Made by a program: the position numbers and the translations under genes. Source: Hemiscyllium ocellatum (lineage: Eukaryota). From it: DNA of 64,000 nt. The notes under the pieces were generated by a model. That model saw only the letters and a program-made list of their open reading frames with translations, ran no database searches and was not told the DNA's origin. Below are positions 12,737-64,000 of this stretch, piece after piece. The stretch lies in the NCBI RefSeq assembly GCF_020745735.1, contig NC_083435.1, positions 10,943,201 to 11,007,200 of the forward strand, written 5' to 3'. How positions within the stretch are numbered: the stretch's first letter is position 1; each line of letters starts with the position of its first letter.

Positions 12737-13506
12737 TAATTCAGAATAATTGAAGAATGTTAAAGGCAATTTGCAGCTGGATTGGAAATCTGTGGCTAAA
12801 ACTCTAGCTCAAATGGTCTTAGTCAAATGTTAATCCTGGAGGTGAAAGACAAATGGAAGCATCAAACCTGATCCCCAAAATCCTGGGAATAAGGATGACC
12901 CCTACTCAGAAAGGGAATTTGATTCAGCCAGTCAATGAAATATATTGTCAATATATTAATACCAAGAGACATAGAAACACGAAAGACCTATTAAAACATT
13001 ACATAGCTTTCACAATGTGGGAAGCCAGGAAGTTGATACAGAGATAGAAGTTGGACTAGGCCATTTGACCCTCACACCTATTCCAATATTCCCTGGAAAT
13101 CTCAACCCCAGAGGGTGGGTGCAAACAGTCATTGAATGTATTCAACTCAGATCATGTTTTTTTCTAAGGAAATAAAGGGAAGTTCACTTGTATGAAAGAG
13201 TGGACTAAGCTTGAGGGCCTGAATGGTCTTCTTTTATTCATATTCTTATGTGCTTATGTGGACAGCTCCAAAGATTCACAGCATTGAGTGAAATAGCTTT
13301 GCATCTCATTGTTAAATGATCTTTGCCTTCCCCTTAGCCAGCCTGCCTCCCTCGTCTCTCCTCCCCCATCTGTGTGAGATTCCTGAACCAATGAAATTCA
13401 ACCTCGCGTCATCAATGTGTAATAATTTGGCTTCTGTCATGGTTAATGTTTCTCTATCACCTTCATCAAGGAAGTCAAGAGTAATATTTTTGAAATGATC
13501 ACTGAC

Positions 13507-13869
13507 CTGCAACATTCAGGGTCACTGTGATATCACTATGCTTGTCATTGGACACAACGAAGCACTGATACTGTCCCCTATCGGAGACCCTGACATCTTT
13601 GAGCCTGAGAGAGAGATTCCCCTGTGTCACTTCATCGAGAAACATCTCAGTCCGGCCATTGTGGGTTGAGGGTTGAAACGTTAGGTCATCTGCTCTCCTA
13701 GTGTACATGTGGACAGGTGAGTTGTAGCCATATTCCATGTTGATCCAGCGGACTTCCATATTCTCTGGGGCTACAGCCATGATCAGCACACAATCCAGGA
13801 TGACATCGCCCCCAACAACCCCTATGATGGGGTCCAATGGTCCTGTCACCTGTAAATCTGCCGCAGTTT
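13507..13869 (-). CDS. IgV exon of a butyrophilin/B7-like receptor (gene B1)
   Basis: Acceptor ctgttccag|AA and donor GCAG|gtcagt; 363 nt, phase 1-1; ETAADLQVTGPLDPIIGVVGGDVILDC..MEVRW..GRTEMF..GNLSLRLKDVRVSDRGQYQCFV..TLNVA has V-set Cys, Trp and D-x-G-x-Y-x-C. Confidence 0.9.
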
Positions 13870-14154
13870 CTGGAACAGCCAGCAGAGAGAGAGAGAGCTA
13901 GAGAATGAGATTCATCAGTCTTCACAAAAGTCATTACAGTTATATCATGAATAATAAGATAGAGAGGGGGAGGCAGACAGACAGAGAGGAAGAAACAGAG
14001 AGACAAAGGAACAAAGAGAGAGTAAGGGAAGGGGAGAGGGAAACGTGGAGAGGCACCAGAGCGAGAGATAAACAGACAGAGAACTAAGAAAATAGTTCAC
14101 ATTTCCCACAGTACTGACCATCTGGCAATGCAGCATTTCCCCAGTACCAACCTG

Positions 14155-33200: not shown

Positions 33201-36200
33201 TGCTAAAATTGCTCATAGTGTTAATGCATTAGTCAGAGGGAAATGGGTCTGGGTGTATTACTCTTCGGAATATTGGTGTTGACTTGTTCGCCGAAGGACC
33301 TATCTCTGCACTGTAGGGAATCTAATCTAAGCTCCATCTGCCACTTCTCAGCCCATTGGCCCATCTGATCAAGATCCCGTTATAATCTGAGATAACCTTC
33401 TTTGCTGTCCACTACACCTCCAATTTTAGTGTCATCTGCAAACTTGCTAACTGTACCTCTAATGCTCACATCCAAATCACGTATATAAATGGGGAAATGT
33501 GGTGGACCCAGCACCAACCCTTGTGGCACTCCACTAGTCACAGGCCTCCAGTCTGAAAAACAACACTCCACCACCACCCTCTGTCTTCTACCTTTCAGCC
33601 AGTTCTGTATCCAAATGGTGAGTTCTCCCTGTCTTCCGCGAAACCTAACCTTGCTAATCAGTCTCCCATGGGGAACCTTGTCGGACACCTTACTGAAGTC
33701 CATATAGACCACGTCCACCATTCTGCCTTCATCAATGCTCTTTGTTACTTCTTCAAAAAACTCAATTGAGTTTGTGAGACATGATTTCCCATGCACAAAG
33801 CCATGTTGGCTATCCCTAATTAGTCCTTGCCTTTCCATATACATGTACATCCTGTCCCTCAGGATTCTCTCCAACAACTTGCCCACCACCGACATTAGGC
33901 CCGCTGGTCTTTGTTCCCTGGCTTGTCCTTACCACCCTTTTTAAACAATGGCACCACGTTAGCCAACCTCCAGTCTTCCGGCACCTCACCTGTGACTATC
34001 AATGATATAAATATCTCAGTAAGAGGCCCAGCAATCACTTCTCTAGTTTCCCACAGAGTTCTCGGTACACCTGATCAGTTCCTGGGGATTTATTCACTGT
34101 TATGCATTTCAAGACATTCAACACTTCCTCCTCTGTGATATGGACATTTTTCAAGATTCCACTTTCTATATCTCTACATTCTATATCTTCCATGTCCTTT
34201 TCCACAATAAATACTGATGCAAAATACTCATTTAGTATCTCTCCCATCTCCTGTGGCTCCACACAAAGGCTGCCATGCTGATCTTTGAGGGGCCCTATTC
34301 TCTCCCCAGCTGCCCTTTTGTCCTTAATGTATTTGTAAAAACACTTTGGATTCTCCTCAACTCTATTTGCCAAAGCTATCTCATGTCTCCTTTTTGTCCT
34401 CCTGGCTTCTTTCCTAAGTATACTCCTACTGCCATTATACTCTTTGAAGGATTCACTCGATCTATCCTATCTATACCTGACATGTGTTTCTTTCTGGTTT
34501 TTAACCAAAACCAAATTTCTCTGGTCATCCAGCAGTCCCTATACCTACCAGCCTTTCCTTTCACCCTAACAACAAGATAATTTCTCTGGACTCTTGTTAT
34601 CTAATTTCTGAAGTCTTCCCATTTTCGAGCCATCCCCTTACGTGCGAATATCTGCACCCAATCAGTTTTTGAAAGTCCTTGCTTTATACCATCAAAATTG
34701 GCCTTCCTCCAATTTAGAACTTCAACTTTTAAATCTGGTCTACCCTTTTCCATCAATATTTCAAAACTAATAGAATTATGGTCGCAGGCGCCAAAGTGCT
34801 CCCCAACTGACACCTCAGTCACCTGCCCTGCCTTATATCCCAAGAGTAGGTCAAGTTTTGCACCTTCTGTGGTATGTATATCCACATACTGAATCAGAAA
34901 ATTTTCTTGGACACACTTAACAAATTCCTCTCTCTCTAAACCATTAACAACCCGTCTATGTTTGGTAAGTTAAAATCCACGACCATAACCATCCTATTAT
35001 TCTTACAGATATCTGAGATATCCTTAAAATTTGTTTCTCAATTTCCCTCTGAATATTAGGCGTCTATAATACAATCACAATAATGTGATCATCCCTTTCT
35101 TATTTCTCAGTTCCATCCAAATAACTTCCCTGGATGTATTTCCAGGAATATCCTCCTTCAGTACAGCTGTAATGCTATGTAAGCACAGAACCAGACCCTT
35201 TGATCCAACTCATCCAGTATTCCAAAAGTGGCCTAACCAACGTCATGTACAGCCACAGAATGACCTCCCAACTCCTAAACTCAATGCTCTGTCCAGTAAA
35301 GGAAGGCATACCAAATGCCTTCTTCTCTATCTTACTCACCTGCAATTCCACTTTTAAGGAACTATGAACAAGGTCACTTTGTTCAGCACCACGCCCCAGT
35401 AACTTGCCATTAAGTGTATTAGTCCTGCCATGATTTGTCTCTTCAAAATGCAGCACCTCACATTTATCTAAACTCCATCTGCCACACCTCAGCTCATTGC
35501 CCCATCTGATCAAGATCCTGTTGTTCTCTGAAATAATCTTCTTCGCTGTCCATTACACTTTCCATTTTTGGTGTTCTCTACAAACTTACTAGCAATACCT
35601 CCTATGTTCACATCCAAATCTCTTTTTTTCAGTAATTGCTATATCAACGTAATAATTATCTTTTTGCTGTAACTGGGTGAAGGTTCCATTACCTAACCTG
35701 GAATATAATCTCTCACCTTCAGAAATATCAGATCGTCCTTTTGCTCCATCTGTTTCTGCAACTCTGAGAGTTTCTCCTCAATAGAATGTAAATACTCCTG
35801 AATCTCTCGAAGATTTTGCTCCATTGTTTCTACAGTCCTCTCCTCTTCTTCCCTGAGATCTCTGAGTAAACGCTGCTCTTTCTCAGTGAGAATCTGGTGC
35901 ATTTTAGTGAACTCGGATGTGATGTGGGTCTGCAGACTGCTCGCCTGTTCCTACCAAATGAAATGTGAAACCTCATTAATGTCCCGCGGTAAAGGGAACA
36001 AAACTAACCGAGATCCCAGAAAATCAGCACAGGGAGAGCTCACCCTCACTTCGGAAATCTTCCGTTTCTGGGTCAGTTCGATTTGTAGAGCCTCCGATGT
36101 CGCCTCTGTGAGAGAATCTAAGGAAGATTTCAGCTTATTCTGACATCAGGAGAGAAAAATCACAGAATTGAATTGTGATTAGACGGCAAAATGTGGTAAA

Positions 36201-36639
36201 TCTCTCGCCCTCCAATACATCCCCCTTTTACCTTGTAGATTTCAACAGCCTCTTTAATCGGGATGAAACGGTGCTCTCTGTGTTCCGCAGTGACACAAAA
36301 CACACAGAGCAATTTCTTGTCAGTTCGGCAAAACAGCTTTAGATCTTCCTGATGTTCCTCACAGTGAGGTTTACTTTCCTTGTCTTTCGGATCCAGCTTT
36401 AATTTTCGAGCTTTCTCCGCCAGATTCGCTAAGGCCCGATTTACCCTGAGGTTTCTTTCCGGAAACTCCTCTCTACATTCCGGGCAGGAGTTTTTCTCCT
36501 TCTTTTCCCAACTCTGGGTGATACAGGAGCGGCAGAAGTTGTGCCCACATTCCAGTATAACCGGCTCGGTGAAGAAATCCAGACAAATGGCACAAACTGC
36601 CTCCTCGGTCCAACTCTCTCCCTGCTGTCTGGACGCCAT
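26675..36639 (-). CDS. TRIM E3 ligase T1 (RING, B-box2, coiled coil, PRY-SPRY/B30.2), 6 coding exons, 476 aa, TRIM39/TRIM35/A33-like class
   Basis: Exons 36232-36639 (408), 36044-36139 (96), 35717-35950 (234), 31772-31794 (23), 30566-30684 (119) and 26675-27225 (551), all GT-AG; sum 1431 nt = 477 codons, open throughout; sizes match the canonical class IV TRIM layout. Confidence 0.92.
27250..28010. repeat. Purine-rich (GA/GGA) low-complexity tract
   Basis: Plus strand almost entirely G/A; abuts the T1 exon 6 acceptor on the minus strand. Confidence 0.85.
28100..30190. mobile_element. Second-clade Penelope-like element (Neptune-type RT), rearranged, with a TG-rich tract at about 28600-28900
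   Basis: [39 protein letters not shown] core (29614-29900, +) with an internal 24-nt duplication at 29814-29861; terminal part with a GAAAGCT hammerhead-like motif at 28155-28190 (-). Confidence 0.75.
30566..30684 (-). CDS. T1 exon 5 (linker)
   Basis: tatattag|C AAG TTT..CAC CCA G|gtaaac; [39 protein letters not shown] with the typical GPLQY-x-x-W-x-x-M motif. Confidence 0.88.
31772..31794 (-). CDS. T1 exon 4 (23 nt)
   Basis: tttctttcag|GAGGAAGCTTGTCGGAAGAAAAG|gtaggg; EEACRKK; the canonical 23-nt TRIM exon supplying the required phase shift. Confidence 0.85.
32222..35620 (-). mobile_element. Near-complete CR1 ORF2 in T1 intron 3, with a SINE inserted at 33015-33330 (+)
   Basis: Endonuclease end [16 protein letters not shown] (34601-34885), [39 protein letters not shown] (33380-33895), C-terminus 32472-33026. 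Confidence 0.92.
35717..35950 (-). CDS. T1 exon 3 (coiled coil)
   Basis: tttggtag|GAACAG..CTGAAG|gtgaga; [44 protein letters not shown]. Confidence 0.92.
36044..36139 (-). CDS. T1 exon 2 (96 nt, coiled coil)
   Basis: gatgtcag|AATAAG..GTGAGG|gtgagc; [32 protein letters not shown]. Confidence 0.9.
36232..36639 (-). CDS. T1 exon 1 (RING + B-box2)
   Basis: [23 protein letters not shown] (C3HC4 RING) and CEEH..LFC..D..CVFC..EHREH (B-box2); TACAAG|gtaaaa. Confidence 0.95.
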
Positions 36640-36837
36640 GTTCACCCTCAGTACTTCCTGATTCAAATCGGTTTTACTGTGGATGATGACGCGCTGGTGA
36701 ACACATTCACTTCAACGATTCCCCGACGAATACACAGGTTCGAATACCTTAAGCTTGTCTGTCTTATTGATACTTTGACAGGAAGTAAAGAAATGTCAAT
36801 ATGTTGAAGAAGAAATAGGGCTGATCGTAGATTCACA

Positions 36838-37265: not shown

Positions 37266-39224
37266 TGTTGAACCCTGGCCGAGAGTGTGAAATTTCATGG
37301 AATGTAAACACTGGGCTGGGCCAGAGAGAGAGAGAGAGGAAGAGAAGGCGGAAATCTGCCCATGAAAGTTTCCAACCTGAAACGTCGACTCCTCTTCCCC
37401 ACTACTTTTTTCCAGCTCCACGCTTCATCCACTCTGACTCTCCAGCTTCTCCACGGAGATCTGCAGGGAGCGAGTTTTCCTTATGGGAGAACATCCTGGA
37501 TTTTAAGCTGCGACTGTTTCAAGTGCGTTGGAATTGAAGCTGAACTTTGGTGCTGGTTGGTAGCAAAACAGTAAATGCTGGCGATAGCAGCGGGTCAGAG
37601 ACACCAGGCTAACGTTTCGAGTCTGGGTGACTCTTCGTCAGATACTGGGGGGATGCTTTCTCTGACTGGAGAGTTTATAAATAGTGAGATCAGTAAGGCT
37701 CGAGGATTAAATCTGAAAACGGGAGAGGAGGAAATGAAGCGTGAAGATTATTGGGTGAACCTGAAGCTGTTTTCTGAAACTGAGCAAAAACTTTTTCCCG
37801 CTGGGAAAGGACTTCTCGAGTCCCGCGCCGCTTCCGCTGCGTTTCTCTAGGTTTCTCCCTCCACCGACTGAGTTTCTTCTGATCAACATCTGATCTTGCT
37901 TAGCAAACACCAGGCTTAGCGTTTCCTGCCGATCAATGAAGCTGTGGAGACCTCCCACAAGGACAATAAACAAAAGACTCGCTTGATCCAGTCGTCCGGG
38001 AGTTTCAAGAAACCCTTTTGTGATTGACTCTCCCGGTGGGAATCTTGGAAATCTTTCACAGAAAACAAACGGCTGTTTTGTAACTGCAAACAAAAGGAGG
38101 AAAGATTTCCGAAGTGAGGGTGAGTTCTCCCTGTGCTGATTTTCTGGGATCTCGGTTAGTTTTGTTCCCTTTATCGCGGGACATTAATGAGGTTTCACAT
38201 TTCATTCTGTAGGAACAGGCGAGCAGTCTGCAGACCCACATCACATCCGAGTTCACTAAAATGCACCAGATTCTCACTGAGAAAGAGCAGCGTTTACTCA
38301 GAGATCTCAGGGAAGAAGAGGAGAGGATTGTAGAACCAATGGAGAAAAACCTTCGAGAGATTCAGGAGAATTTAAATTCTGTTGAAGAGGAACTCTCAAA
38401 GTTGCAGAAACAGATGGAACAAATTTGGGGGAGGATAGTTCTGAAGGTGAGGGAAGGTATTGCTGGTGGGTTCAGTGTAAGGTCACTGTCGCTTAGGAAG
38501 AGGCGCAGTCCAGATACACAGGATGGAGCAGTTCAGTTATGAAGAGGTGCTGGATCGGCTCGGCGAGCGATCTTTAGGTCAGAAAGTCACAGGACATCAG
38601 GTTTATTTGAAATCACAAGCTTTCGAAGCGCTGCTCCTTTGTGACATGAAGTACAGCAGCGATCCGAAAGCTTGTGATTTTAACGAAACCTGTTGGACTA
38701 GAACCTGTTGTCATGTGACTTCTGACCTTGACCACCCCAGCCCAACACTGGCACCTCCATGTTACGTCTTCTTTAGAGCAGAAAAGAATGAGACCGGATC
38801 TGATTAAAGCGTACACGATGAAAAGGGGTCTGGGCAGGATGGAGAGAGAGAAGCTGTTGCCATTATTCGAAGCGTCATCATCGAAGGGAGGGACAATGTT
38901 AAGAGGAATAGGAGATTTATGTGGGATTTAGGGAAAATGTTTTTCGTTTAGGGCGATGGGAGTCTGGAGTGGATTGTTTGCGATGGTTTAAGGTGGAAAC
39001 CTTTTTTTTAAAAAGTCCTTGGATGAGCTCTTGAACTGCAGTAACATTCACGGCTAAGGGTCAAATGCTAAAATGTGAAATGAATGTAGATAGGTCAGTG
39101 CAGGTTCGATGGGCCGAATGGGCCGTGGTTTCAGATCGTACCGGACACAGGAGCAGGTGAGTCTTGTTTGCGATTAGATTAGGTTCCCTCCGGTGTGGAA
39201 ACAGGCCATTTGGCTCAACAAGTC

Positions 39225-43878: not shown

Positions 43879-44109
<231 letters not shown>

Positions 44110-44690
44110 TGAAGAGTGGGAGTGGTCCGAGAGTCTTTCAGGAGGGGATAAGTTTCTGGAATGTGGAGCTGATTCCTGGAGATAGTTATGTTGCCCCCAC
44201 ATGGAATCCCCTCTCCCCGAGTGTGAATCCCCGGAAGATCGGGGTTTTCCTGGACTACGAGGGTGGACAGGTGTCATTTTACAATGTGGACACCATGTCC
44301 CATCTCCACACTTTCACCCACACTTTCATTGAGAGGCTCTTTCCCATCTTCAGTCCGGGAGGGAATGACGGCGGGAAAAACTCCGCCCCGCTGACAATCT
44401 GCGGGATTAAAGGGCACTGACAGATCCATCCCATAATTTCACCCCGTCCCCCTGCCTCCTGCCAGCTGTAAACTGATGGGGGTCGGTCTCAGTCTGGGGG
44501 AGAGAAGGAGGGGGAGAGAAGAAACAAATAGAAGCTCAATTGTAGAGAGGGACTGACTGGGTAGAATGAGCTGTGAGCTGCAGGAACCCGGGGACCTTCC
44601 TGCCTGTAATGTTGCTCCACAGGCGGGAGGTGGCGCTACATGACATATCTGGGCAGGGCCGCGGCCGTCCTGTTCTCAGTAAATTGAACA

Positions 44691-48087: not shown

Positions 48088-48605
48088 CTAGTTCTTGACT
48101 GGACAGACAGTTAAGGGCGACTTATCCCAGCCAGGCCAAAAGAATGGGTAGACCTTTTCTGAAAAGTTGACTTGAAATGTGTAAAGGTGGAACATGTCAT
48201 CGGCATTGTAAAAAGACACCCTTCCTGCCTCCATCTCCAGGAACACCCCGATCGTTCCAGGACTGGTCGTTACTGTGACTTTGGAGCGTTGCGCATCACT
48301 TATTCCATATGGCTCACCATCCTTCCCAATTGTCCAGAACCCAGCATCGGCGCACAGGTCAGGCATGCCCTTGCGCTGCACTGAGCCTTTGGTGACGCCT
48401 ACATCCCAGTAGGACTTGTCAGCCACCTTCACCTCCCAGTAGTGGGACCCCTCCGCGAAACCATCCATGCCCAGCACATAAGGGACAGAGTCAAACCGCT
48501 CCGGATTGTCTGGGACATCCTGTGCATCTCCGGCTTGCACACTCAGCCTGTCTGGAGACACCGTCAGACACGCGTTGGCTGTTTCAGGGTCCATCTTTAC
48601 ATGGG
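48088..48605 (-). CDS. Terminal PRY-SPRY (B30.2) exon of butyrophilin-like gene B2
   Basis: ttttctttcctag|CC CAT GTA AAG ATG GAC CCT; AHVKMDPETANACL..PERFD..GSHYWEVKV..WDVGV..IGVFLEMEAGRVSFYN..YPFFWPG..CPVKN*; 518 nt, phase 1, open. Confidence 0.93.
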
Positions 48606-49422
48606 CTAGGAAAGAAAACAAGATGAGAAATGGAAGCAAGAACAGACTGCACAGCCCCTTAAACTTGCTCCATTGATCAATACGATCATAGCATCCCCAT
48701 AGTGTGGAAAGAGGCCATTTGACCCATCATGTATCCACTGATCCTCTCAAAAGCATCCCACCCATAAACAGACTTTGATCCCATCTGCATAATTCTGCAT
48801 ACAGCATGACCAATCCACCCAGCCTGCACATCTCTGGACTGTGGCAGGAAACTGGAGCACCCAATAGGAAACCCAAACAACTGTGGGAAGAACACACAAA
48901 TGCCATACATCACCGACCTGTCTCCCAAGTTACTTCACTATCCACCAAACCGCAATCCCCTTGTCTCTGAAATAGCCTAGAGATCAGTCATTCAGCTCAA
49001 GAGAAATTAGGCATGGGCACCAAATGCCAGCCTCAACAGCAATGCCCACCTCCCATGTAAGCATAAAGAGAAAACACAATATCCTGACAAAAGCTCCATC
49101 AATTGCACCCTTGAATGTATTCAATGATTGTAGCCTAAAGATCAGGAGATGCCCAGAGTTCTGAACATCAATAAATCTCAGAGCAAAAACATTTCTCCTC
49201 ATCTCAATCCAAAATGTCTGACCCCTCACTACTTTTTCAAGTCAGGCAGCTGTTAGCACTGCGGACTCACAGCACCAAGACCCAGGCTCGATTTCAGCTT
49301 GGATGACTGTCTGTGTGGAGTTTGCATGTTCTCTCTGTATCCATGTGGATTTCCACTGAGTGCGCCAGTTTCCTCTCAGTCCAAAGTTGTGCAGGTTAGA
49401 TGGATTAGCTAAAACTTGCTCT

Positions 49423-52833: not shown

Positions 52834-52860
52834 CTGCATAGCTCCGTATCCTGTTCCACT
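52834..52860 (-). CDS. B2 micro-exon k (27 nt) EWNRIRSYA
   Basis: acttttgcag|AGTGGAACAGGATACGGAGCTATGCAG|gtaaga; matches the W-x-x-x-x-x-x-A pre-B30.2 exon typical of butyrophilins. Confidence 0.88.
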
Positions 52861-53124
52861 CTGCAAAAGTAACACAGAAATAGTAACTGAAGATAACTAA
52901 TAAACTGTAGTACTCTCAAACACGACAGCAGTCAAAGTACATTGTGGCTTTCAGTACACCAAGGATCTGACATTGGCCCACAGTGGGTAGCGAAAGGCAA
53001 AGACACACACACACACACCAGATTAAATGAAATAAAAGTAGCAATTAACATAATTTTGATCATCACACTCCCTTGTTCCATTTATTTCAATGTTACTCTG
53101 GGCTAACATAAAAAAATATACAAA

Positions 53125-54040
53125 CGTTGATAGATTCTTAGAGTTATAGAGGTATACAGCACAGAACAAACTCTTCAATGCAACTCATCCATACTGAGCA
53201 GAAATCCTAAATTAATCTCTTCCCATTTGCCAGCATTTGGCATAAATCCCTCTAAACCCTTCCTATTCACATATCCATCCAGGTTTCTTTTAAATGCTGT
53301 AACTGTACCAGCCTCCACCATTTCCCCTAGCAACTCATTCCATACACACACCCCGTCCTCTGCAATGAAAACGTTGCCCCTTAGGTCCCTTTTAAATCTT
53401 ACTGAAAAGTTATGCCTTCTAGTTTTGGACTCCCCCATCCTGGAGAAAAGACCTTGGTTATTCACCCTATCCCCACCCTTCATGATTTTATAAACCTGTT
53501 ATGTCACCACTCAGCTCCCGATGTGCCTGAGAAAACAGCCGCAGCCTATTCAGCCTCTCCCTATAGCTCAGCCCCTCCAACCCTGGCAATATCCTTCCGA
53601 TAGGAGGGAGATCAAAATTGCATACAATATTTCAAAAGTAGCCTAACTAATGTCCTGTACAACTGCAACATGACCTCCCAAACCCAATACTCAATGCAGT
53701 GACAAAAAAAAGCATACCAAATGTTTTTTTCACTATCCTATCTATCTGCGATTCCACTTTCAAGGAACTACAAACCTGCAACATAAGGTCTCTGTTCAGC
53801 AACACTCCCCAGGGACTGTTCAGTGTATATGTTCTGCCCTAATTTGTCTTTCCAAAATTTGACACCTCCCATTTAATCGAAATTAAAACTCAAGAACCAT
53901 TGTCACTCCTCGGTATAATAGCCCATCTAATCCCAGTGCTATTGTATTCTGAGGTAACGTTCTTCGCTGTCCACAAGACAACCAATTTTGGTGTTATCTG
54001 TAAACATACTAACTATAATCTCCTGTATTCATATCCAAAT
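53125..54040 (-). mobile_element. CR1 LINE 3' fragment in a B2 intron
   Basis: GDRVNNQGLFSRMGESKTR..VWNELLGEMVEAGTVTAFKR. Confidence 0.85.
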
Positions 54041-54099
54041 CATTTGTACAAATGACAACTGAAGATTCTTTTCAATGTGCATTCATACAGGTATCATAC

Positions 54100-54126
54100 C
54101 TGACTGGACCAGAGGTCTCCATTGCT
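54100..54126 (-). CDS. B2 micro-exon j (27 nt) EQWRPLVQS
   Basis: tttcatttcag|AGCAATGGAGACCTCTGGTCCAGTCAG|gtatga. Confidence 0.82.
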
Positions 54127-54982
54127 CTGAAATGAAACAGTGAAGAGAAAATGTGTGAATAAAACCCACTCAATACACTTAACACTATCAACAAATTTTG
54201 CTTTCACGTCAGAGTTTTCTTAAGGAATAAAGCCGAATCCATTTTAAGAATAGCAGCAATAACTAACGCATTATTAACAAAATCTAGCCAGGGTGTGAAG
54301 TCCTGATCTATTGCCAGCATTTCGGATCAACAAATACCTGCGCCAGCAGTTCCCATTCTATTTTCTACGTCAACAGTCAGACTGTGATTGCAACATCTGG
54401 CCATCTAGTGGCACTACAGAGCAAGTTACTGAAGCTCCCTGCTCAACTCCCACCAATATTTTCATTTTTGGTAAAGAACACGCAAGGGTATATTTTCTGA
54501 GAAGCACTGGAGGATTAGCCTCCTGCAATAGAACTGCCCGAGTTTCCATCTTAAACGAAATTTGAAGGGACGAAAATTGGACCCATTGCCCAGCAACACC
54601 TTATAAATTCCCAATCCATGTTCATTAACTGGGAAGTGATCAATTCAAAGTGAATCCAGACTTTGACTATGATTTATTTCACACTCTATAATTTTAGTTA
54701 AAAATGAGGAGGCCCAGGTCAATTTCCACAAAGTTGCCGTTTGCAGACATGATGATCTCTAGATGCTCAATCTCTCATGAGCGCCTGCAGCTCGGTCTAG
54801 AAATCTGTTTCAGGAAACAAGTTATTTGTAACACCAGGAAGGAGACTAGTCAATCCCAGATTATTACATCCAACTGAGGGAAAGTATGGTGCAGACTTGA
54901 ACCTGTTTTTTTTTAATGCTCAATTACTAACTGTAGCTGGGCTGAAGATGAAGGCACATTTTTTTACTGACAGCTAACTCAC

Positions 54983-55009
54983 CAAATTCAGTGCGTAGCT
55001 TCTGATATT
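54983..55009 (-). CDS. B2 micro-exon i (27 nt) EYQKLRTEF
   Basis: ccttattcacag|AATATCAGAAGCTACGCACTGAATTTG|gtgagt. Confidence 0.85.
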
Positions 55010-55379
55010 CTGTGAATAAGGAATGATCAGAAATGGTTAAAGCAAAGAACTGATACCTTCAAATGAAATGAACGATTTCATAAACAATTGACTATACGTA
55101 CAAATTTCAATATCAGTAGTTATTTCCCAAAGCTGATTTCAAACAAAAAAAAACGAACTGACCTGTGTTCATATACTGCCTTCTAATAGGGCACCAATGA
55201 TTTACAAGGAGATGGTACAAAACTAATGCAATAGATTTGAAACATTAACTCAGTTTTACCTCTTTCAACTGATGCTCCCTGGACTGCTGAGTTTCTTTGT
55301 TTTAGATCACTAACCAATCATTTTGTGAAATGAAGGAGAGATAGATGTAGAGATTGGGGGTGGGGTGGGGGCAGGAGAT

Positions 55380-55427
55380 AGAGAGACATAGACATAGATA
55401 TATAGACATAGACATAGACAGAGATAG

Positions 55428-55472
<45 letters not shown>

Positions 55473-55480
55473 TAGAGAGA
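55380..55480. repeat. GATA/GAGAGATA microsatellite within a purine-rich tract (about 55340-55950)
   Basis: Runs of gacataga and gagagagata. Confidence 0.9.
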
Positions 55481-56082
55481 TAGCAAAAGAGGCAGACAGA
55501 ATGAGACAGACAGTCAGGCAGGCAGACAGAGTAAAGAAAGAATACAGAAGGAGTTTTGAGAAGATGGAATACAGGAAGACGAAGAGGGAATGAAGAAAAT
55601 GGATAGGGCAGGAAGCAAAAGGGCAGCAGGTGTGACGAGGTGCAGAAGAAAGAATGAACTGGGGAGAAAACAAGCAGGAAGAGGAGAGGGATAGGAAGAC
55701 ACAAGGTGGAAAAGAGAGACAGAGATGCAGAGACATTAGCAGAAGAGAAGGTGAGATGAGGAAGGAGAGCAGAAGAGAATGAATGAAAAAGGGAAAGAAA
55801 GGAAGAACATGGGGAGCATTTGGGGTGGGGGTGTCAGAGAGAGAGACAGACAGAAAGATTCTGAGGAGCAGAAGGTGAGAATGGGAGAGGAAAGCGAGAG
55901 AAAATATGAAAAGCGAATGAGGCGGAGAGACTGAGAATGAAAATTAGCAGAGAGAGAAGCATTTGCTGTCTGCTTCCGGGTTTTCAATCTGTTCCCTGTC
56001 AGAGCATGTACCATCCCAGTCCCCTCCCTGCTCCAGTGTCGAGGTGAACTTCACTTCTTCAGGCCCACACACAGTTACATAC

Positions 56083-56109
56083 CTGCTTTCTCTGTCTCCC
56101 TCTCTTCAT
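56083..56109 (-). CDS. B2 micro-exon h (27 nt) DEERETEKA
   Basis: ctgtcttacag|ATGAAGAGAGGGAGACAGAGAAAGCAG|gtatgt. Confidence 0.82.
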
Positions 56110-56249
56110 CTGTAAGACAGAATCAAGAACTTAGCAATAGCATGGAACAATGACCCGAGTGAGACATTATACAATATTGATAAAATGGAAAATCAAGGCT
56201 AAAATGTGTGCTCCTCGACACTGGTAATGTGACTGAGTCCCAACACAGA

Positions 56250-56806
56250 CTGAGAAACAGGCCCCCGGCCCTGAGCGCAGCCTGAGAAACAGGCCCCCGG
56301 CCCTGAGCGCAGCCTGAGAAACAGGCCCCCGGCCCTGAGCGCAGCCTGAGAAACAGGCCCCCGGCCCTGAGCGCAGCCTGAGAAACAGGCCCCCGGCCCT
56401 GAGCGCAGCCTGAGAAACAGGCCCCCGGCCCTGAGCGCAGCCTGAGAAACAGGCCCCCGGCCCTGAGCGCAGCCTGAGAAACAGGCCCCCGGCCCTGAGC
56501 GCAGCCTGAGAAACAGGCCCCCGGCCCTGAGCGCAGACTGAGAAACAGGCCCCCAGCCTGAGCACAGCCTGAGAAACAGGCCCCCAGCCTGAGCGCAGAC
56601 TGAGAAACAGGTACCAGCTCGAGCACAGAGTGAGAAACAGACTTCAGCCCAAGCACAGAAAGAGGCCCCCCGCGTGAGGAGAGACTGAGAAACAGCCCCC
56701 AGACTGAGTACAGATGGAGAAACAGGCCCCAGGCTGAGTACAGATGGAGAAACAGGCCCCAGACTGAGTACAGATGGAGAAACCGGCCCCAGACTGAGCA
56801 CAGACT
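56250..56806. repeat. GC-rich minisatellite, 32-bp unit CTGAGAAACAGGCCCCCGGCCCTGAGCGCAGC
   Basis: Nine essentially identical units starting at 56250, 56282 and so on to 56506, then about 8 diverged 30-31-bp units. Confidence 0.95.
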
Positions 56807-56884
56807 GTGGAAGAGCTGCAGTGAGTCTGCCTTTGGTTTGAATTGGCCATCGACAGAAATAAAAAATCTGATTAAATTACTTAC

Positions 56885-56911
56885 CAACTTGTTTCTTAAA
56901 TTGTTCGTGTT
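56885..56911 (-). CDS. B2 micro-exon g (27 nt) EHEQFKKQV
   Basis: tgtatattacag|AACACGAACAATTTAAGAAACAAGTTG|gtaagt. Confidence 0.85.
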
Positions 56912-57049
56912 CTGTAATATACAAGGGAGAGGCATTAATCACAAATTTGAATTTCACACAATGTCTCAACCTTCTTTTTCTGCTATCCTTTGTTATCCTC
57001 TGTGCTCGATATTGACCTCTGTGCTCTGAGCTTAGTCTCCATTGGCCAG

Positions 57050-58310
57050 ACTCACCCGGTCTGGGAGGAGACTGCAGTAGCCCATGCAAGCATCTACCAC
57101 CACAAACTGGAGCAGTGGATAGTGCAACAGCAATCCAATCGACGGTTCTCTGTGCCAGCTGTACTTACACAGCAAACCCCCAGCTACAGCAGGAATCATC
57201 TACCCGAATACCAGGGCAAGCATTGGGTCAGGCCAACATTGGCATCATCTGGGGAGTGAGGAGTTCATGCTATCGGAAGGATGTTGTGAAACCTGAAAGG
57301 GTTGAGAAAAAAAATTTACAGTGATGTTGCCAGGGTTTGAGAATTTGAGCTATAGGGAGAGGCTGAATAGGCTGGGTCTGTTTTCCCTGGAGGTTTATAA
57401 AATCATGTGGGGCATGGAGAGGATAAATAGACAAGATCATTTAAACCTTAAGATTTAAAAGGCACCCAAGGGGAAATGTTTTCACGCAGAGGGTGGTGAG
57501 TGCATGGAATGAGCCATCAGAGGACATGAAGGAGGCTGGTACAATTACAATATTTAAAACAAATCTGGATGGGTATATGATTAGGAAAGGTTTAAAGGGA
57601 TATGGGCTAAATGCTGGCAAATGGGACTTGATTATTTTACGATATCTGGTTGGCATGGACGAGTTGGATTGAAGAGTCTGTTTCCATGCTGTACATCTCT
57701 GTCACTCTATGCCCTTTCCCTCAGGGTAGGGACAAAACCCAGAAGACATAAAGCAGCTAGAACACGAACAGATGTTCACTAACATGGGGAACCAACTCTC
57801 CAGGAAGGAATGGTCAATATCTTGGTCAAAGTGACCACTGTCCAGGAATGGGAACTCTCAGAATTACACAATGTGTGGATTATTTAAATGTCTTTGAACT
57901 CAGAAAATAAGTTGATAGGGTTGTTAAGAAGGCGTATGGTGTGTTGGCTCTCATTAGCTGGGGGTTTTAGTTTAAGGGCTGCAAGGTTATGCTGCAGCTT
58001 TACAGAGCCCTGGTTAGATCACACTTGGAATATTGTGTTCAGTTTTGGTCACCTCATTGTAGGAAGAATGTGGAAGATTTAGAGAAGGGGCAGAGGAGAT
58101 TTACCAGGAGGCTGCCTTGACTGGAGGGCATGTCTTTTGAAGAAATGTTGAGGGAGCTAAGGGTTTTCTCATGGGAGCGAGGAAGGGTGAGAGGCGATTT
58201 GATAGAGGTGTACAAGATGATGACAGGCAGAGACAGAGTGAATAGTCAGAGACTTTTTATTCCTCGGACAGAAATGGCTATCACAAGGGGGCATAATTTT
58301 AAGATGTTTG
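57050..58310 (+). mobile_element. Two CR1 3' fragments (about 57050-57710 and 57900-58310)
   Basis: RKDVVKPERVEKK and RGRVRGDLIEVYKMMTGRDRV peptides. Confidence 0.8.
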
Positions 58311-58471
58311 GAGGGAAAAAAAGTGAGGGATGGGAAGGCCTGTTTGATTGGTTGTGAGGAATTGGAGACACAAAGTCATGTGACCAAACCTCCAGAAGTG
58401 CATCAAACCAGAGTTGATAACACATCTGCTGTCCCTCTCCTCCAGCAGAAATTCCTCAGCTCCCTGCATAC

Positions 58472-58498
58472 CTGCAATAATGGTGGCCATTTTCTTTT
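58472..58498 (-). CDS. B2 micro-exon f (27 nt) EKKMATIIA
   Basis: ccttttttacag|AAAAGAAAATGGCCACCATTATTGCAG|gtatgc. Confidence 0.82.
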
Positions 58499-59139
58499 CT
58501 GTAAAAAAGGAAAAGAAAGAGATGTTAAAGCATAGAACCTTCTAGAAGACGCAACCCAGTACAAGGCTTCTGGAGTGAATGTGGTGAATACAATCCAGAT
58601 CTACCCTCGCCCTGCACAGGTTAGCGATGAGATTACCCAGTCCACCAGGTTAGGTACAGAATAAAAACTATCCTTCTACCCTGTCCCATTAAATACTTCC
58701 AGTATAACACAGATTAGATATAGAGTGAAGCTCCCTCAAAACCATCCTATCAAACACTCCTGGGTCAGGGAAAATACAGGGTTAGAATCAGATTGAAGCT
58801 CTGTCTATACCACCCCCATCAAAAATTCCCAGGAGGTATAGCACAGTTAGAAACAATATAAATCTTCTTGTTCTTTACTGTTCCATCAAATACTCTCAGG
58901 AGATGCAGATATGGACTAGATATAGCACAAAGGTGCCTCTGACTGTTGGCATCAAACACTTTGGTATATCCAGTAAAGCCAATCCCATTAAGCTGAAAGC
59001 ACCTGGAATAAATTTGGGGTAATTCACCAAATTGGTTGTGAGAAACTAAAGGCAATGTGATGCTGGTGAAGAAAGATATGCTGAACATGAGCTGCGAACC
59101 CAAACCCAGAGAGAAAATACTTTGGAAATGATCGCTTAC

Positions 59140-59166
59140 CGTGCAACTGCTGGAGTTCTTCACATT
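59140..59166 (-). CDS. B2 micro-exon e (27 nt) ECEELQQLH
   Basis: tttttctctacag|AATGTGAAGAACTCCAGCAGTTGCACG|gtaagc. Confidence 0.85.
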
Positions 59167-60249
59167 CTGTAGAGAAAAATAGATAAGAGCGAAATTTGTC
59201 ATATGCGGAACAAAGCAAAGCAATCTAAAATCAGATCATTGGTTGTAGCAGAAATGTCACTGAAAAATCCCTGAAATCATTTCTCAAATCAGAGATATTT
59301 TTAAGTTTAGACAAAAAAAACTTTTTAAAAATAATTGATATGTGAGTAATTCTTGCATAGCATTGCTCACCTATCAGATAATACACTGCATATATATTAC
59401 ACAACAACTTACATTTAGAGAGAGAGTCTGTTTTTCTTCAACTACATCTCAAAATATTTTCAAATGTAATATTTGAAGCATCAGCTACACAGTGAGGTAT
59501 TAGGTCAGATGACTAAAGACTTTATCAATGAGGGAGGTTTTCATGGGAACGTGTTTAAAGAAGGTAATTGAGATTTGGTAGGGGTGTAGTGTTTGGAACT
59601 GAAGCAACTGAAACCGTCCTCTCCAATGAAGGAACAATTATAATTTTTGGTATGGAGAGGCTAGAATTAAAGGACCACAGGAATGTCAGAGTTACAGAGC
59701 AGAGAAGGCAAGGACATGAGGGGATTGGGTGGGAAATTAAGAATGGAGACATTTTTCAACTAGGAGCCAACGTAGGTCTGCAAACATCGGAGTGGAACAG
59801 GGGTTAGTGAAGACACAGGCAGCAGAGTGCTGGATGGCCCCAAATTTACAGGCTAGACTGTGAAAGCCCAGTCAGAGGGTGTTGAATGAGATGAAACTGT
59901 GTTGTCAGGAATGCATTTTTCCTCTGATATATTGGAGGTTTGCATTCCTCACAGAATGTCAAAGGCTAGAAACGACTAGAAAATACTGAAATATGGGAGA
60001 CATTATTTGACTATTTGTAGAATTGTGAAGAGAATAGATTATGAAATCAATGACTGATTCACAAACACATGCCCTGATAAAAATAAAATGTGTAACTCAC
60101 TCAATCTCAGGGAGCAGGAGGAGTGTGTGTTCATGGGAAGATTAAATCTTCCTTATGAACAGAAGTCTGCGATTAACTCCAGGTATTCTGGTCAGGTTTT
60201 ATGAGCCTTTTTATCAAAGTTGCAAAGACAACAAAATCACAGGAATCTT

Positions 60250-60555
60250 TTCTTTCCTACAGTGTGGGAACTGGCCCTTCAGCCCAACAAATCCATACCG
60301 ACCCTCTGAAGAGTAACACACCCAGACCCATTACCCTTGACTAATGCACCTAACCGACACATCCCTGAACACTACGGGCAATTTAGTAACAGCCAATTCA
60401 CCTAACCCGCATATCTTTGGATTGTGGGAGGTATCCCACACAGACACAGGGAGAATGTGTAAAGTCCACACAGACAGTTGCCCGAGGCTGGAATCAAACT
60501 CAGGTCCCTAGTGCTGTCAGGCAGCAGTGCTGTCCACTGGGCCACCCGTGCCACC
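60250..60555 (-). mobile_element. tRNA-derived V-SINE (HE1-like)
   Basis: Aligns to 5779-6098 with small deletions. Confidence 0.85.
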
Positions 60556-61062
60556 CTCTGCAGAGTAATTTTGCTGTTCACTCTCTGATTAGACTCTACC
60601 CTCATAAACCCAGTGCCTCTTAAAACTGATGCTAAGTCTCTCCTTCTCGCATTTGCTGGCAGTTTCGATCAGTGAGCATTTTGGAAAGTAGTGAACACAC
60701 CAGACTTGCTGCAATATTAATAGTGATTTAAAGAGGAGTGCATTTCTAGATATCCACAGATTCCCAGCTCTGGGATTTGTTCCCATCAGCTCAAGAAATT
60801 CCCAGAAAGTCAGCTTCTCAAGGATCCCTGTTCTGAGATCAATGAACATAACCAGCTCATAGTGAAGAAGTGACTGAATTAACTCATCCACTTCACATCA
60901 CGTAGTGATAGGAGAGTATTACAATTTAATGTCCATTTTGATGGAGCAGTTTGGGTGATACGGCCATTAACAGTTATTTACAAACCTGTTAACTTGTCTT
61001 CAGATGGGCTGATGCTGAAATGAAACATTACAATCCAAACAGCGTGTGTTCGCATAACTCAC

Positions 61063-61089
61063 CTTTTTTCCTTGCTTGCTTCGCGTTCT
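61063..61089 (-). CDS. B2 micro-exon d (27 nt) ENAKQARKK
   Basis: ttccatttcag|AGAACGCGAAGCAAGCAAGGAAAAAAG|gtgagt. Confidence 0.83.
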
Positions 61090-61393
61090 CTGAAATGGAA
61101 TAAACAAACAACGATGTGATCCTGAGTCGACAGTAACCAGGTCAATGTCTGTCCTTCTCTTGCTCCCAGAATGGTAGAGGTTCAAACCCACTCCTTCATT
61201 CAGCACCTGCTTTATTGCAAATCCCCTGATGGGTCTGCCATGAGTTCTACGTTGTTCCAAAATGGTTTCTCTCCCACTAGAATCTGGTCCCAGTCAGAGT
61301 TACCATCCCGCTTTCCCATCGCTCTCCCACTGTCTTGCTCTGGGCATAATCCACCCACACCTCCCTTCTATCCAATTGATTTCATGTTCTTAC

Positions 61394-61420
61394 CTATCTC
61401 CTGGTGCAGTCTTTGATGCT
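61394..61420 (-). CDS. B2 micro-exon c (27 nt) EHQRLHQEI
   Basis: ttttttttaaacag|AGCATCAAAGACTGCACCAGGAGATAG|gtaaga. Confidence 0.85.
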   Translation of the reverse strand, partial: SIKDCTRR

Positions 61421-61568
61421 CTGTTTAAAAAAAAGTGAAAACACCTCAGTGAGATGACAATAAAGTGACCATGCAATATCTCTGTTTGAAATTGACTCCA
61501 GTCTTGAAACTGCACAGAAACACAATCAGGGTCTGAATGGAACCATCCCCAGCATCCTGATTACTAAC

Positions 61569-61595
61569 CTTCATGCACCTTTCTCTTCTCTTGCT
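61569..61595 (-). CDS. B2 micro-exon b (27 nt) EQEKRKVHE
   Basis: taaaatttcag|AGCAAGAGAAGAGAAAGGTGCATGAAG|gttagt. Confidence 0.8.
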
Positions 61596-61717
61596 CTGAA
61601 ATTTTAAAAATAATCCATGTAAGAAATGGTGAAAAATACAGAGGATTCATTTAGATTTAATTAACAGTGACCATGTGTCCTCCAGTGTTTTATAGAAACA
61701 GAACTGTCTATTTAATG

Positions 61718-62364
61718 TGTTATGGACCAGACCAAACCTCCTCAAACATCTAAAAAGATAACACAGAGCTGAACTTTTATTTAAGGGCAAGTGTAAGGCC
61801 CTTCTTTGTAAATGTGATTCAATAGGTCAAACTAACAGGCTTTGAGAAAAACACTATTCCAACACCACAATAAAATGCAAACTCAAAACAAAGAATTGGC
61901 ACAACTTTATCTCCCTTGAAGACCTAATAAAATACTATTTAACTACTACACATCAACTGTTCCAATATCGCAGCATCCCATGAACCCACTCTTGGTGAAG
62001 GCAAATTCAGCAGAACAATTTTTCCAGACTTGCTACCTCCTCCAGTCCAGAAGAAGGAGAACCAACAGAATGAATCCAGCAGCAAAGAGAGAGAGAGAAT
62101 GTAAGCTTTTAGCAGCAACTAAGAGAGAGCTGTATCTTGCAGCTTCACTCCAAAACCCCAACTTCAACAACTGAAAGCAAAACTAAAACTCTGGGTCGTT
62201 GAGAGCCTGACTCCATGTGCTCGGACTTCTTCAGCTTAATTTTTTTAAAGAAGCAGCTATTCACTCTGCTGTCCATGCAGCAGACATCTCGGCTCCAGGT
62301 TTACAATTCCTCTCTTCAAGAACCAGGACAGAACAAATCCCTCTCAAAGGCACATCTCATCACA
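61718..62364. mobile_element. Probable solo LTR
   Basis: TGTTATG..CATCACA termini (imperfect terminal inverted repeat); flanks AATG and AAGG (3 of 4 match to a 4-bp TSD). Confidence 0.5.
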
Positions 62365-62394
62365 AAGGAAGCATTACAGTATAGACTGATGGGC

Positions 62395-62715
62395 TGAAAA
62401 GCCTCTCCTGTATTGTATTCTTCTACATAGCCAACCTGTGAACAGCAAGATCCCACAAACAGTAACCAGGACAACGACTAGATCATTTGATTCCTCCAAT
62501 GTTAATCGCATGATAAATATTGGCCAGGACACTGGGGAGCCCTCATCTGTTCTTCTTAGAGATACAGCATGTGCTTCCATTCATTCAAAGGCCACGCATT
62601 GAAGCCTAATCTAAATGTCAGCTCCTCTGACAATGCAGCATTCCCTCAGCTCTGTGGAGTGTCAACCTGGAGTTTCGTCCCCAAATCCTGGATAGGAACT
62701 TGAAGCCAAAACCTC
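62395..62715 (-). mobile_element. Deu-domain SINE remnant
   Basis: ATATTGGCCAGGACACTGGGGAG and GCAGCATTCCCTCAG..GGAGTGTCAACCTGG match the reverse complement of the Deu core as recalled. Confidence 0.55.
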
Positions 62716-63308
62716 ATCATAGAACCACAATTCATTCAAGACATAAAACTCATCTTTGTAATGGAGAAAAACTGACTATTCCATCTTGCAGAACATATCG
62801 ACAGTCTCGTCCTCCTTTCGCTTCTCAGTGCCAACCCACCCACAGTTCTGAAAACCATTCTTCCCGTTCAGGTCTGCAATGAGGAGAAATTTCCTCAATC
62901 TATGGGCTGTGAATCTTGTGAATTCTTTGCCTCATCAATCAAAAATGCAGGAAAATAAAAATGTAGGCTCTTTATGTGAGATATTGCAGAGGAGTCAATC
63001 CTCCAAGATCAGACTGAACAGTGGAACAGCTCAACCTGCTCCAGCTGACCCCTGCTCTGGCTTCTCATTTTGTTCTCCACATCATTTTCGATAAAATGCA
63101 TTGAGATATTCTCAGAATGTGAAAGGTGTTACAGAAATGCAAATATTTCTTACTATTCATGCCATGAAGACCTTCAAACCCAAACTATTTGTTAACCGTT
63201 ACATCACCAGACCTAGAATTAGAGTTCTTCTCTCAAATGCTGTGACCATACTTCCACATCATTGGGTTTCCCATTCCCTTCACATTTAAGTTTCAAACAG
63301 CAACTTAC

Positions 63309-63335
63309 CCATGATATCCAGCAGCCTTTGATGTT
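63309..63335 (-). CDS. B2 micro-exon a (27 nt) xHQRLLDIM; upstream exons lie beyond the window
   Basis: gactcattacag|AACATCAAAGGCTGCTGGATATCATGG|gtaagt. Confidence 0.85.
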
Positions 63336-63469: not shown

Positions 63470-63870
63470 AAGATATAAGGGAGGGAGAGGAGGGAGAAGC
63501 ACACAGGAAGGAGGAGCAAGAAGGAGTGTGGAGGAAAGGGGAGGGGATGGAGGAAAGGGGAGGGGATGGAGGAAAGGGGAGGGGATGGAGGAAAGGGGAG
63601 GGGAGGTGACATGTTTAAGATGGGTGAGAAGGAAGGAGGAGCAGTGAGAGAGGAGATAGGAAGGGGAGGATGAGAAAGAACAAAGGAGAAGGAGAAAGGG
63701 AAGGTGAAGGAGGGAGAAAAGGGAGAAGGAAGGATGGAGAGAAATAGGGAAGGAGAAGAGGTGGGAGAGCGGAGGAACAAAAGAACGAGGAGGAGGGAAA
63801 GATGAGGAGGAGGAGAGAGAGAAGGGAGAGAGGGGAAGAGGGGGTGGAGGAAGGGGAAGGACAAAGGAGA
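63470..63870. repeat. Purine-rich GGA/GAA low-complexity tract
   Basis: Includes three copies of GGAGGAAAGGGGAGGGGAT. Confidence 0.85.
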
Positions 63871-63964
63871 AGGGCCCAATATCTGGTTATCAGAGTGAAT
63901 AAACTGGAGAGAAACTAGGAGAGGGTCACTGACAGAGGATATGGACTCAAAACAATGGAATAGT

Positions 63965-64000
63965 GGGCGGCATGGTGGCACAGTGGTTAGCACTGCTGCC
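63965..64000 (+). mobile_element. 5' end of an HE1-like SINE
   Basis: GGGCGGCATGGTGGCACAGTGGTTAGCACTGCTGCC. Confidence 0.8.

Follow-up and report, generated by a model that had tools for sequence, protein, structure and literature searches.

Micro-exon stalks are a known hallmark of the butyrophilin family. In mammalian butyrophilins (BTNs), a few very short 'heptad' exons lie between the exon for the transmembrane (TM) segment and the exon for the intracellular B30.2 domain, and a coiled-coil dimer has been proposed for the segment that they encode. The juxtamembrane region of BTN3A, about 40 residues in heptad register, has been modelled as a parallel coiled-coil dimer that governs the topology of B30.2 and IgV; in mammals this region couples ligand sensing by B30.2 to the ectodomain read by gamma-delta T cells, and its conformation is debated. 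Chicken BG molecules are disulfide-linked dimers with 27-37 micro-exons of 21 nucleotides (nt; a few of 18 or 24), which encode true heptads and vary rapidly in number. Here we describe the stalk of a butyrophilin gene of the epaulette shark, Hemiscyllium ocellatum, which is encoded by 27-nt exons of two alternating types. The gene lies on the minus strand of a stretch of 64,000 nt (NCBI RefSeq assembly GCF_020745735.1, contig NC_083435.1, positions 10,943,201 to 11,007,200), hereafter the window, and coordinates are counted from the first letter of the window.

The shark protein resembles mammalian BTN3A1, BTN3A3 and BTN2A1 in its IgV-IgC-TM-stalk-B30.2 order, in a homologous B30.2 (E = 1e-44 to 5hm7 and to chains of full-length BTN complex entries), in a stalk made of short exons and in an EW-type unit directly before B30.2. 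Whereas the mammalian stalks have few heptad exons and about 40 residues, that of the shark has twelve 27-nt exons of two types, about 108 residues and an 18/5 periodicity (18 residues in five helical turns), and the two align weakly outside the last unit. With chicken BG the shark gene shares membership of the butyrophilin family, a long array of micro-exons that are symmetric (phase 1) and split their first codon, a helical tail in the cytoplasm that bears a hydrophobic stripe and, if the shark stalk pairs as proposed below, a dimeric molecule. Unlike BG, which has one IgV and no B30.2, it has an IgC, a B30.2 at the end, 27-nt exons in A/B pairs, a constant 12 or 10 units and near-zero power at a period of 3.5 residues.

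The 18/5 pattern is an accepted coiled-coil periodicity (7+7+4, with the stutter delocalised over two heptads), and a straight helix takes 3.63 residues for each turn. The shark stalk has the same 3-4-3-4-4 core spacing as described 18/5 coiled coils and, with 3.6 near 3.63, very little supercoil would be expected. In the published description the 18/5 pattern is a local stutter, whereas in the shark it is uniform over the stalk and encoded as pairs of equal exons. Our literature search found nothing relevant on 27-nt butyrophilin exons or on shark butyrophilin stalks. We regard as new the 27-nt (2.5-turn) exons, hence two alternating types, the uniform 18/5 pattern and the presence of 12 or 10 units in all sampled chondrichthyans.

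The gene and its micro-exons

An epaulette-shark butyrophilin gene that had already been annotated (IgV-IgC-TM-stalk-B30.2) contributes its 3' two-thirds to the window; it spans about 23 kb and has its 5' third past the window end. The sequence has no runs of N and a G+C content of about 40-50%. When eleven micro-exons and the B30.2 exon are spliced in silico, the product equals residues 283-553 of XP_060706870.1 (P0154; annotated as "butyrophilin subfamily 1 member A1-like") at 100% identity. In this protein Pfam recognises a V-set domain (residues 29-130), a BTN-type C2-set_3 domain (141-226), PRY and SPRY, and a hydrophobic segment ends at residue 265. The Ig domains, the TM segment and a twelfth nine-residue unit (GLKKSDGFL, upstream of exon a) lie beyond the window end and are known from the annotated protein alone. 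A single large B30.2 exon, IgV and IgC domains with a TM segment, and multiple very short exons between TM and B30.2 together identify the gene as a butyrophilin.

The initial annotation of this DNA had placed eleven micro-exons here, and all were found on the minus strand, from 63335 down to 52834, as 27-nt exons of phase 1-1 with AG before and GT after each. Every one begins with A, ends with G and has a pyrimidine tract upstream. In the order of transcription, with one unused candidate inserted, the features are as follows; all eleven micro-exons are part of XP_060706870.1.

63309..63335, minus strand: micro-exon a, type A, EHQRLLDIM, with AG/GT flanks
61569..61595, minus strand: micro-exon b, type B, EQEKRKVHE, with donor GTTAGT
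61394..61420, minus strand: micro-exon c, type A, EHQRLHQEI
61063..61089, minus strand: micro-exon d, type B, ENAKQARKK
59140..59166, minus strand: micro-exon e, type A, ECEELQQLH
58472..58498, minus strand: micro-exon f, type B, EKKMATIIA
56885..56911, minus strand: micro-exon g, type A, EHEQFKKQV
56083..56109, minus strand: micro-exon h, type B, DEERETEKA
54983..55009, minus strand: micro-exon i, type A, EYQKLRTEF, with Y, K, L and one E invariant in 15 orthologues
54338..54364, minus strand: doubtful, unused 27-nt candidate exon between i and j, ENRMGTAGA, sharing 17 of 27 nt with exon f
54100..54126, minus strand: micro-exon j, type B, EQWRPLVQS, with E-Q-W-x-P-L invariant in 15 orthologues
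52834..52860, minus strand: micro-exon k, type A, EWNRIRSYA, the last unit before B30.2
48088..48605, minus strand: terminal exon of 518 nt, encoding PRY-SPRY (B30.2) and the stop codon (48088-48090), with a phase-1 acceptor at 48605

The exon scan looked for AG, the exon and GT together with an open phase-1 frame. Strict criteria (AG/27 nt/GTRAG, a pyrimidine tract of at least 0.65 and an open frame) leave nine candidates on the two strands of the whole 64-kb window, seven of them inside the array. When 27-nt candidates are instead selected for a Glu-codon start and a final G, 11 of the 15 found on the minus strand of the window fall in the array region, where the plus strand has two. The candidate at 54338-54364 has AG/GT flanks, a poor pyrimidine tract and a GTATTT donor; it is missing from both XP_060706870.1 and the skate transcript described below, and its sequence suggests that it is possibly a decayed B-type exon. 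If included, it would disrupt the A/B order.

Transcript-level proof of this exon architecture comes from the little skate, a lineage distant from sharks. An RNA-seq contig (L002) of the skate orthologue (P0163), mapped on its genomic locus (L001), resolves into a 120-nt TM exon, twelve 27-nt exons with AG/GT flanks and a B30.2 exon. The mapping revealed no additional exon within the twelve-exon series; exons that break the alternation, which the initial annotation had named as a refutation, are absent from the skate transcript.

Pfam searches of the B30.2 region (window 48091-48726, minus strand) matched PRY at 2.8e-16 and SPRY at 1.4e-21. The closest solved structures are intracellular domains of human BTN3A1, BTN3A3 and BTN2A1 (best E = 1e-44), and BTN2A2 also ranks among the best solved relatives. 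A search of 1.8 billion representatives with the B30.2 exon returned 4779 relatives, and a similar long stalk occurs in three of the best 150. The stalk itself matched no Pfam family, and the skate stalk (P0020, residues 265-383) as sole query matched nothing except itself.

Exon alternation and the 18-residue repeat

All six odd exons carry the motif E-[HCYW]-x-x-[LFI] and none of the five even exons does, an alternation that runs unbroken over the eleven exons, as first described from the sequence. Exons a and c, which had been called nucleotide paralogues, share 17 of 27 nt and are the top pair in the array. For a motif-free test, all 462 possible 6/5 splits of the 11 exons were scored by within-class minus between-class nucleotide identity, and the odd/even split ranked 3 of 462 in the shark and 12 of 462 in the little skate. 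When the exons of the two species are compared, 11.6 of 27 nt agree between non-orthologous exons within a class, 9.7 between exons of different class and 15.2 between orthologous exons.

Hydrophobicity over the 99 residues of the shark stalk, analysed by Fourier transform on three scales, peaks at a period of 3.59-3.60 (power 8.7-13.5; residue-shuffle p <= 2e-4), and power falls to 0.05-1.2 at period 3.5. Among 16 orthologues (Callorhinchus, seven sharks, two skates and six rays), 14 have their best period on the LIVMFYW scale at 3.56-3.64, and the 18/5 periodicity proposed in place of heptads is thus both present in the shark and conserved. Pooled over nine genera, LIVMFYW residues occupy position 5 of the 18-mer in 94% of cases, position 9 in 71%, position 2 in 63%, position 16 in 48% and position 12 in 29%. 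These are the positions at which apolar residues had been noticed, with less regularity at 12 and 16; position 15 is mostly Ala or Leu. The 3-4-3-4-4 core spacing is strong in the A units, weak in the B units.

The continuity of this stripe depends on exon order. In each of seven lineages, permuted exon orders have as much power at 3.6 as the real order in 0-1.1% of trials (p 0.0000-0.011), and shuffling within exons attains it in at most 0.12% of trials; the permutation test indicates that the stripe is continuous only because A and B exons alternate. Since nine residues make 2.5 helical turns, a single exon type would be unable to hold a stripe on one face, and two types alternate instead. 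Type A provides strong core residues at codons 2, 5 and 9; in type B the core positions, at codons 3 and 6-7, are weaker and rich in Ala. An A+B pair of 18 residues completes five turns. Relative to a straight helix, an 18/5 repeat implies left-handed twist of about 0.8 degrees at each residue; this adds up to about 90 degrees along the stalk, where heptads would give about 400 degrees.

Deleting one internal exon in silico lowers the 3.6 power from 13.2 to a mean of 2.6, whereas deleting an adjacent pair leaves a mean of 11.1. The expectation that skipping a pair keeps the helical register is borne out by these values. The companion claim, that a single skip simply turns B30.2 by about 180 degrees, does not fit them: skipping one exon would set the halves of the stripe on opposite faces and probably break pairing. 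The initial annotation had gone further and suggested a splice-controlled switch: regulated skipping of a single micro-exon would turn the register through 180 degrees, so that B30.2 is reoriented or uncoupled. In its favour, all exons are symmetric (phase 1-1) and any skip stays in frame, nine residues equal 2.5 turns and a single skip collapses in silico a stripe that a pair skip spares, and macaque BTN3A transcripts lacking one heptad exon are on record. Against it, we identified no isoforms differing by 9 or 18 residues in NCBI models or in listed members of the 90% clusters, including skate RNA-seq assemblies, a survey of assemblies and gene models rather than a targeted test. RefSeq has two transcripts for Hemiscyllium and four for Chiloscyllium, each set encoding one identical protein, the listed RNA-derived skate members of this gene all have 553 residues, and the number of units is constant at 12 or 10 among sampled chondrichthyans. 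The switch is not supported by these transcripts, and we consider it very unlikely.

Skate cluster members of 527 residues were also considered as a shorter isoform. They differ at about 270-285 positions and represent a neighbouring paralogue.

The predicted helix and its possible partners

AlphaFold2, run on a monomer of stalk plus B30.2 with an alignment of 15 orthologues, predicts one unbroken helix over construct residues 22-122 (about 100 residues). The mean predicted local distance difference test score (pLDDT) of ten-residue blocks is 87-94 for residues 21-100 and 86-76 after, and the helix breaks at a conserved S-x-G in the membrane-proximal unit. The B30.2 part is poorly modelled because the alignment is shallow. 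In this monomer form of the structure check that the initial annotation had proposed, the stalk is predicted to be helical rather than disordered, and a sustained 3.6 periodicity and a continuous alpha-helix in the monomer, both expected of an 18/5 coiled coil, are found together.

The same model bears on a quite different fold. Units of exactly nine residues recall nonad alpha/beta coiled coils, with one beta-layer per nine-residue unit as in the stalks of trimeric autotransporters; nonads are known to give beta-layers, and exon f contains M-A-T. The AlphaFold2 helix is unbroken, power lies at 3.6 and not at the 9/2 or 9/3 harmonics, the repeat is of 18 residues and not 9, with A and B units that differ, and the beta-layer consensus (aliphatic-A-T-K-polar-D/E) is missing from all units other than f. 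This reading is already largely refuted, and we give it next to no weight.

On a helical wheel (100 degrees per residue) the apolar sector spans 20-100 degrees. On one side of it, at 340-0 degrees, lie the acidic positions 8 and 1 (57% and 76%); on the other, at 120-160 degrees, lie the basic positions 13, 6 and 17 (79%, 51% and 38%). Because the acidic and basic flanks lie on opposite sides, they would form inter-helix salt bridges between parallel, in-register helices and would repel each other in an antiparallel pair. These complementary flanks are indirect support for packed helices.

On balance we favour, with moderate confidence, a paired-exon stalk that is a long helix, forms a parallel, in-register 18/5 coiled-coil dimer and acts as a spacer for B30.2. 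The predicted helix, about 100 residues or about 15 nm long, has an almost straight stripe of period 3.6 between an acidic and a basic flank. Two such helices, in a homodimer or with a paralogue, would pair parallel and in register into a nearly unsupercoiled 18/5 coiled coil. The coiled coil would fix the distance and orientation of B30.2 relative to the membrane, a role already proposed for the coiled coil in the juxtamembrane region of mammalian BTN3A, and changes in its length during evolution would spare the stripe only if made by exon pairs. That the stalk dimerises at all we infer by analogy with the BTN3A juxtamembrane models and the chicken BG dimer.

Several points weigh against this proposal. 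The AlphaFold2 evidence is a monomer run with 15 sequences only, and exon j contains an invariant proline. Core occupancy in the B units is low (29% and 48% at positions 12 and 16), and the mean over the five positions, about 60%, is below the expectation for a classical coiled coil. A Fourier analysis over about 100 residues hardly resolves periods of 3.5, 3.6 and 3.67, the 16 species are orthologues and hence dependent samples, and a helix on a flat partner or surface would likewise show a period of 3.6. Most of the orthologous proteins are gene predictions, and an older model, GCC38320.1 (P0158, Chiloscyllium punctatum), is without the four micro-exons c, d, h and i.

The low core occupancy of the B units would also suit a monomeric rigid spacer, in which one stable ER/K-like alpha-helix does no more than hold B30.2 at a set distance from the membrane and offers its stripe to another protein as a docking face. 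AlphaFold2 predicts a lone 100-residue helix with high pLDDT, E, K and R abound in the B units, and opposite-charge pairs at i,i+3 are enriched in the stalk (17 against 9.0 expected, p = 0.001). Single alpha-helices of the ER/K kind are marked by a very high E/K/R content, by enrichment of i,i+4 salt bridges and by the lack of a hydrophobic stripe. In the shark stalk E+D+K+R make up just 43% and LIVMFYW 23%, pairs at i,i+4 are not enriched (12 against 9.0, p = 0.15), and there is a conserved stripe whose acidic and basic flanks are unexpected in such a helix. The mammalian and chicken relatives, moreover, are reported or modelled as dimers, and we regard a monomeric spacer as unlikely.

Helices could also pair in another geometry: as an antiparallel dimer like that of TRIM proteins, as a hairpin folded on itself, or as an obligate heteromer with a neighbouring butyrophilin-like chain. 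The shark B30.2 has relatives in the B30.2 domains of TRIM proteins, which follow the butyrophilins among its best solved matches. In human BTN3A1, pairing of the juxtamembrane region with that of BTN3A2 or BTN3A3 is favoured as a heteromer, and several butyrophilin-like genes lie close by in the shark. N-terminal TM anchors in both chains favour parallel pairing, the opposite-sided charge flanks suit a parallel and clash in an antiparallel arrangement, and the AlphaFold2 model has no hairpin. We hold these geometries to be improbable, with the note that the heteromeric version is compatible with the parallel coiled coil that we favour.

Finally, a straight 3.6 stripe could belong to an amphipathic helix lying on the inner leaflet, on a lipid droplet or on a cytoskeletal filament, since a period of 3.6 requires no supercoil, as on a flat surface. 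Proteins that bind lipids through 11-mer repeats are comparable surface-binding helices. The soluble tail of chicken BG competes with tropomyosin, and BTN1A1 has a role in the secretion of milk-fat droplets. The apolar sector of the shark stalk covers a narrow arc of about 80 degrees and is Ala in part, one of its flanks is strongly acidic, and a slight acidic excess (23 D+E against 20 K+R) is poorly suited to acidic membranes. Surface binding of this kind appears rather remote to us.

Unit number in cartilaginous fishes and neighbouring features

All three groups of chondrichthyans that were sampled, namely chimaera, sharks, and skates and rays, share this design. There are 12 units in Callorhinchus, Heterodontus, Hemiscyllium, two Chiloscyllium species, Cetorhinus, Carcharodon, Mustelus, Leucoraja and Amblyraja, and 10 in Hemitrygon, Hypanus, two Mobula species and Narcine; the count leaves out a Scyliorhinus model that has no TM segment and seven units only. 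MAFFT alignment opens gaps of exactly 18 residues at two different sites. Aligned unit by unit, the stingrays and mobulids lack g+h, and Narcine retains g and h and is without a pair near c-e. The initial annotation had asked whether orthologues change length in pairs, and they do so in these two events, each of two units and at different sites. Both being even, the two events fit the pair rule as far as the aligned sequences indicate, and they are too few for statistics. The final three units are near-invariant, including E-Q-W-x-P-L and E-W-x-R, and a last unit of the EW...A type is also found directly before B30.2 in many other butyrophilin-like proteins.

The eight units of GCC38320.1 were considered as the loss of two pairs, a reading that we rejected when the newer RefSeq model of the same gene (P0161) proved to have all 12. 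The loss of four 27-nt exons from the older model is a warning for annotation.

Two paralogous butyrophilin-like genes with TRIM-like B30.2 domains have short stalks, namely P0159 (Stegostoma; five units in the order G-A-A-B-A, with two A-type units adjacent) and P0160 (Hemiscyllium; two units). We counted them neither for nor against the alternation; either P0159 departs from the pair rule or its model misses exons.

Growth of the array by duplication of exon pairs, as initially suggested, is plausible from the sequences. The two nucleotide classes, present in both shark and skate, speak for it. The introns do not, as they show no class-specific homology, and their top pairs, f-i and c-h, both cross the classes. 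Because the introns share no homology, pair duplication is unproven, and the likeness within A and within B may be convergence on an amino-acid pattern. Any such duplication would be ancient, because the 12-unit array is already found in Callorhinchus.

A bolder view would take exon pairing as an encoded register rule, under which stalks change only by five-turn steps in evolution and possibly in regulated splicing. Inclusion or skipping of a single exon (for example 54338-54364) would then work as an on/off control, interrupting the stripe of the dimer and releasing B30.2 from its coupling to the ectodomain, and the 12-unit array would be the ancestral stalk of jawed vertebrates, the source of both the mammalian 'heptad' exons and the chicken BG tails. 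We offer this as a speculation with little chance of being right as a whole.

Other features of the window are listed below.

13505-13870, minus strand: IgV exon of another butyrophilin-like gene, 90% identical to residues 555-684 of a fused Chiloscyllium plagiosum model (P0162) and 67% identical to the IgV of XP_060706870.1
26678-27229, minus strand: TRIM B30.2 exon, part of a head-to-head TRIM gene pair
35802-36711, minus strand: TRIM gene segment with a RING/B-box exon at 36163-36711 (minus strand)
38213-38539, plus strand: TRIM gene segment, with mirrored coiled-coil exons on both strands
43894-44417, plus strand: TRIM B30.2 exon, matched in two pieces, 43894-44145 and 44142/44154-44417
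55375-55480 and 63529-63604: purine-rich simple repeats
56244-56807: 32-nt minisatellite in the g-h intron, about 18 copies (the first 11.5 at 97% identity)
63940-64000, and scattered (e.g. 60400-60560): copies resembling tRNA-derived short interspersed elements (SINEs), with the motif GGTGGCACAGTGGTTAGCACTGC

The IgV exon at 13505-13870 indicates that the next tandem member of the family begins downstream of the gene described here. The two-piece match of the TRIM B30.2 exon at 43894-44417 suggests a frameshift, and the B30.2 exons of the TRIM pair have 74-80% identity to those of the short-stalk paralogues P0159 and P0160. Introns are filled with the tRNA-derived SINE-like copies and other interspersed repeats.

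In the cartilaginous fishes, the butyrophilin stalk is much longer than in mammals and very regular, and its geometry is readable from the gene. It offers a natural model for asking whether such a stalk is a straight dimeric rod or not, and why its length is held to whole five-turn steps. Set beside the 21-nt exons of chicken BG, the 27-nt exons of two paired types likewise provide a natural model of how exon size, phase and helical register co-evolve.

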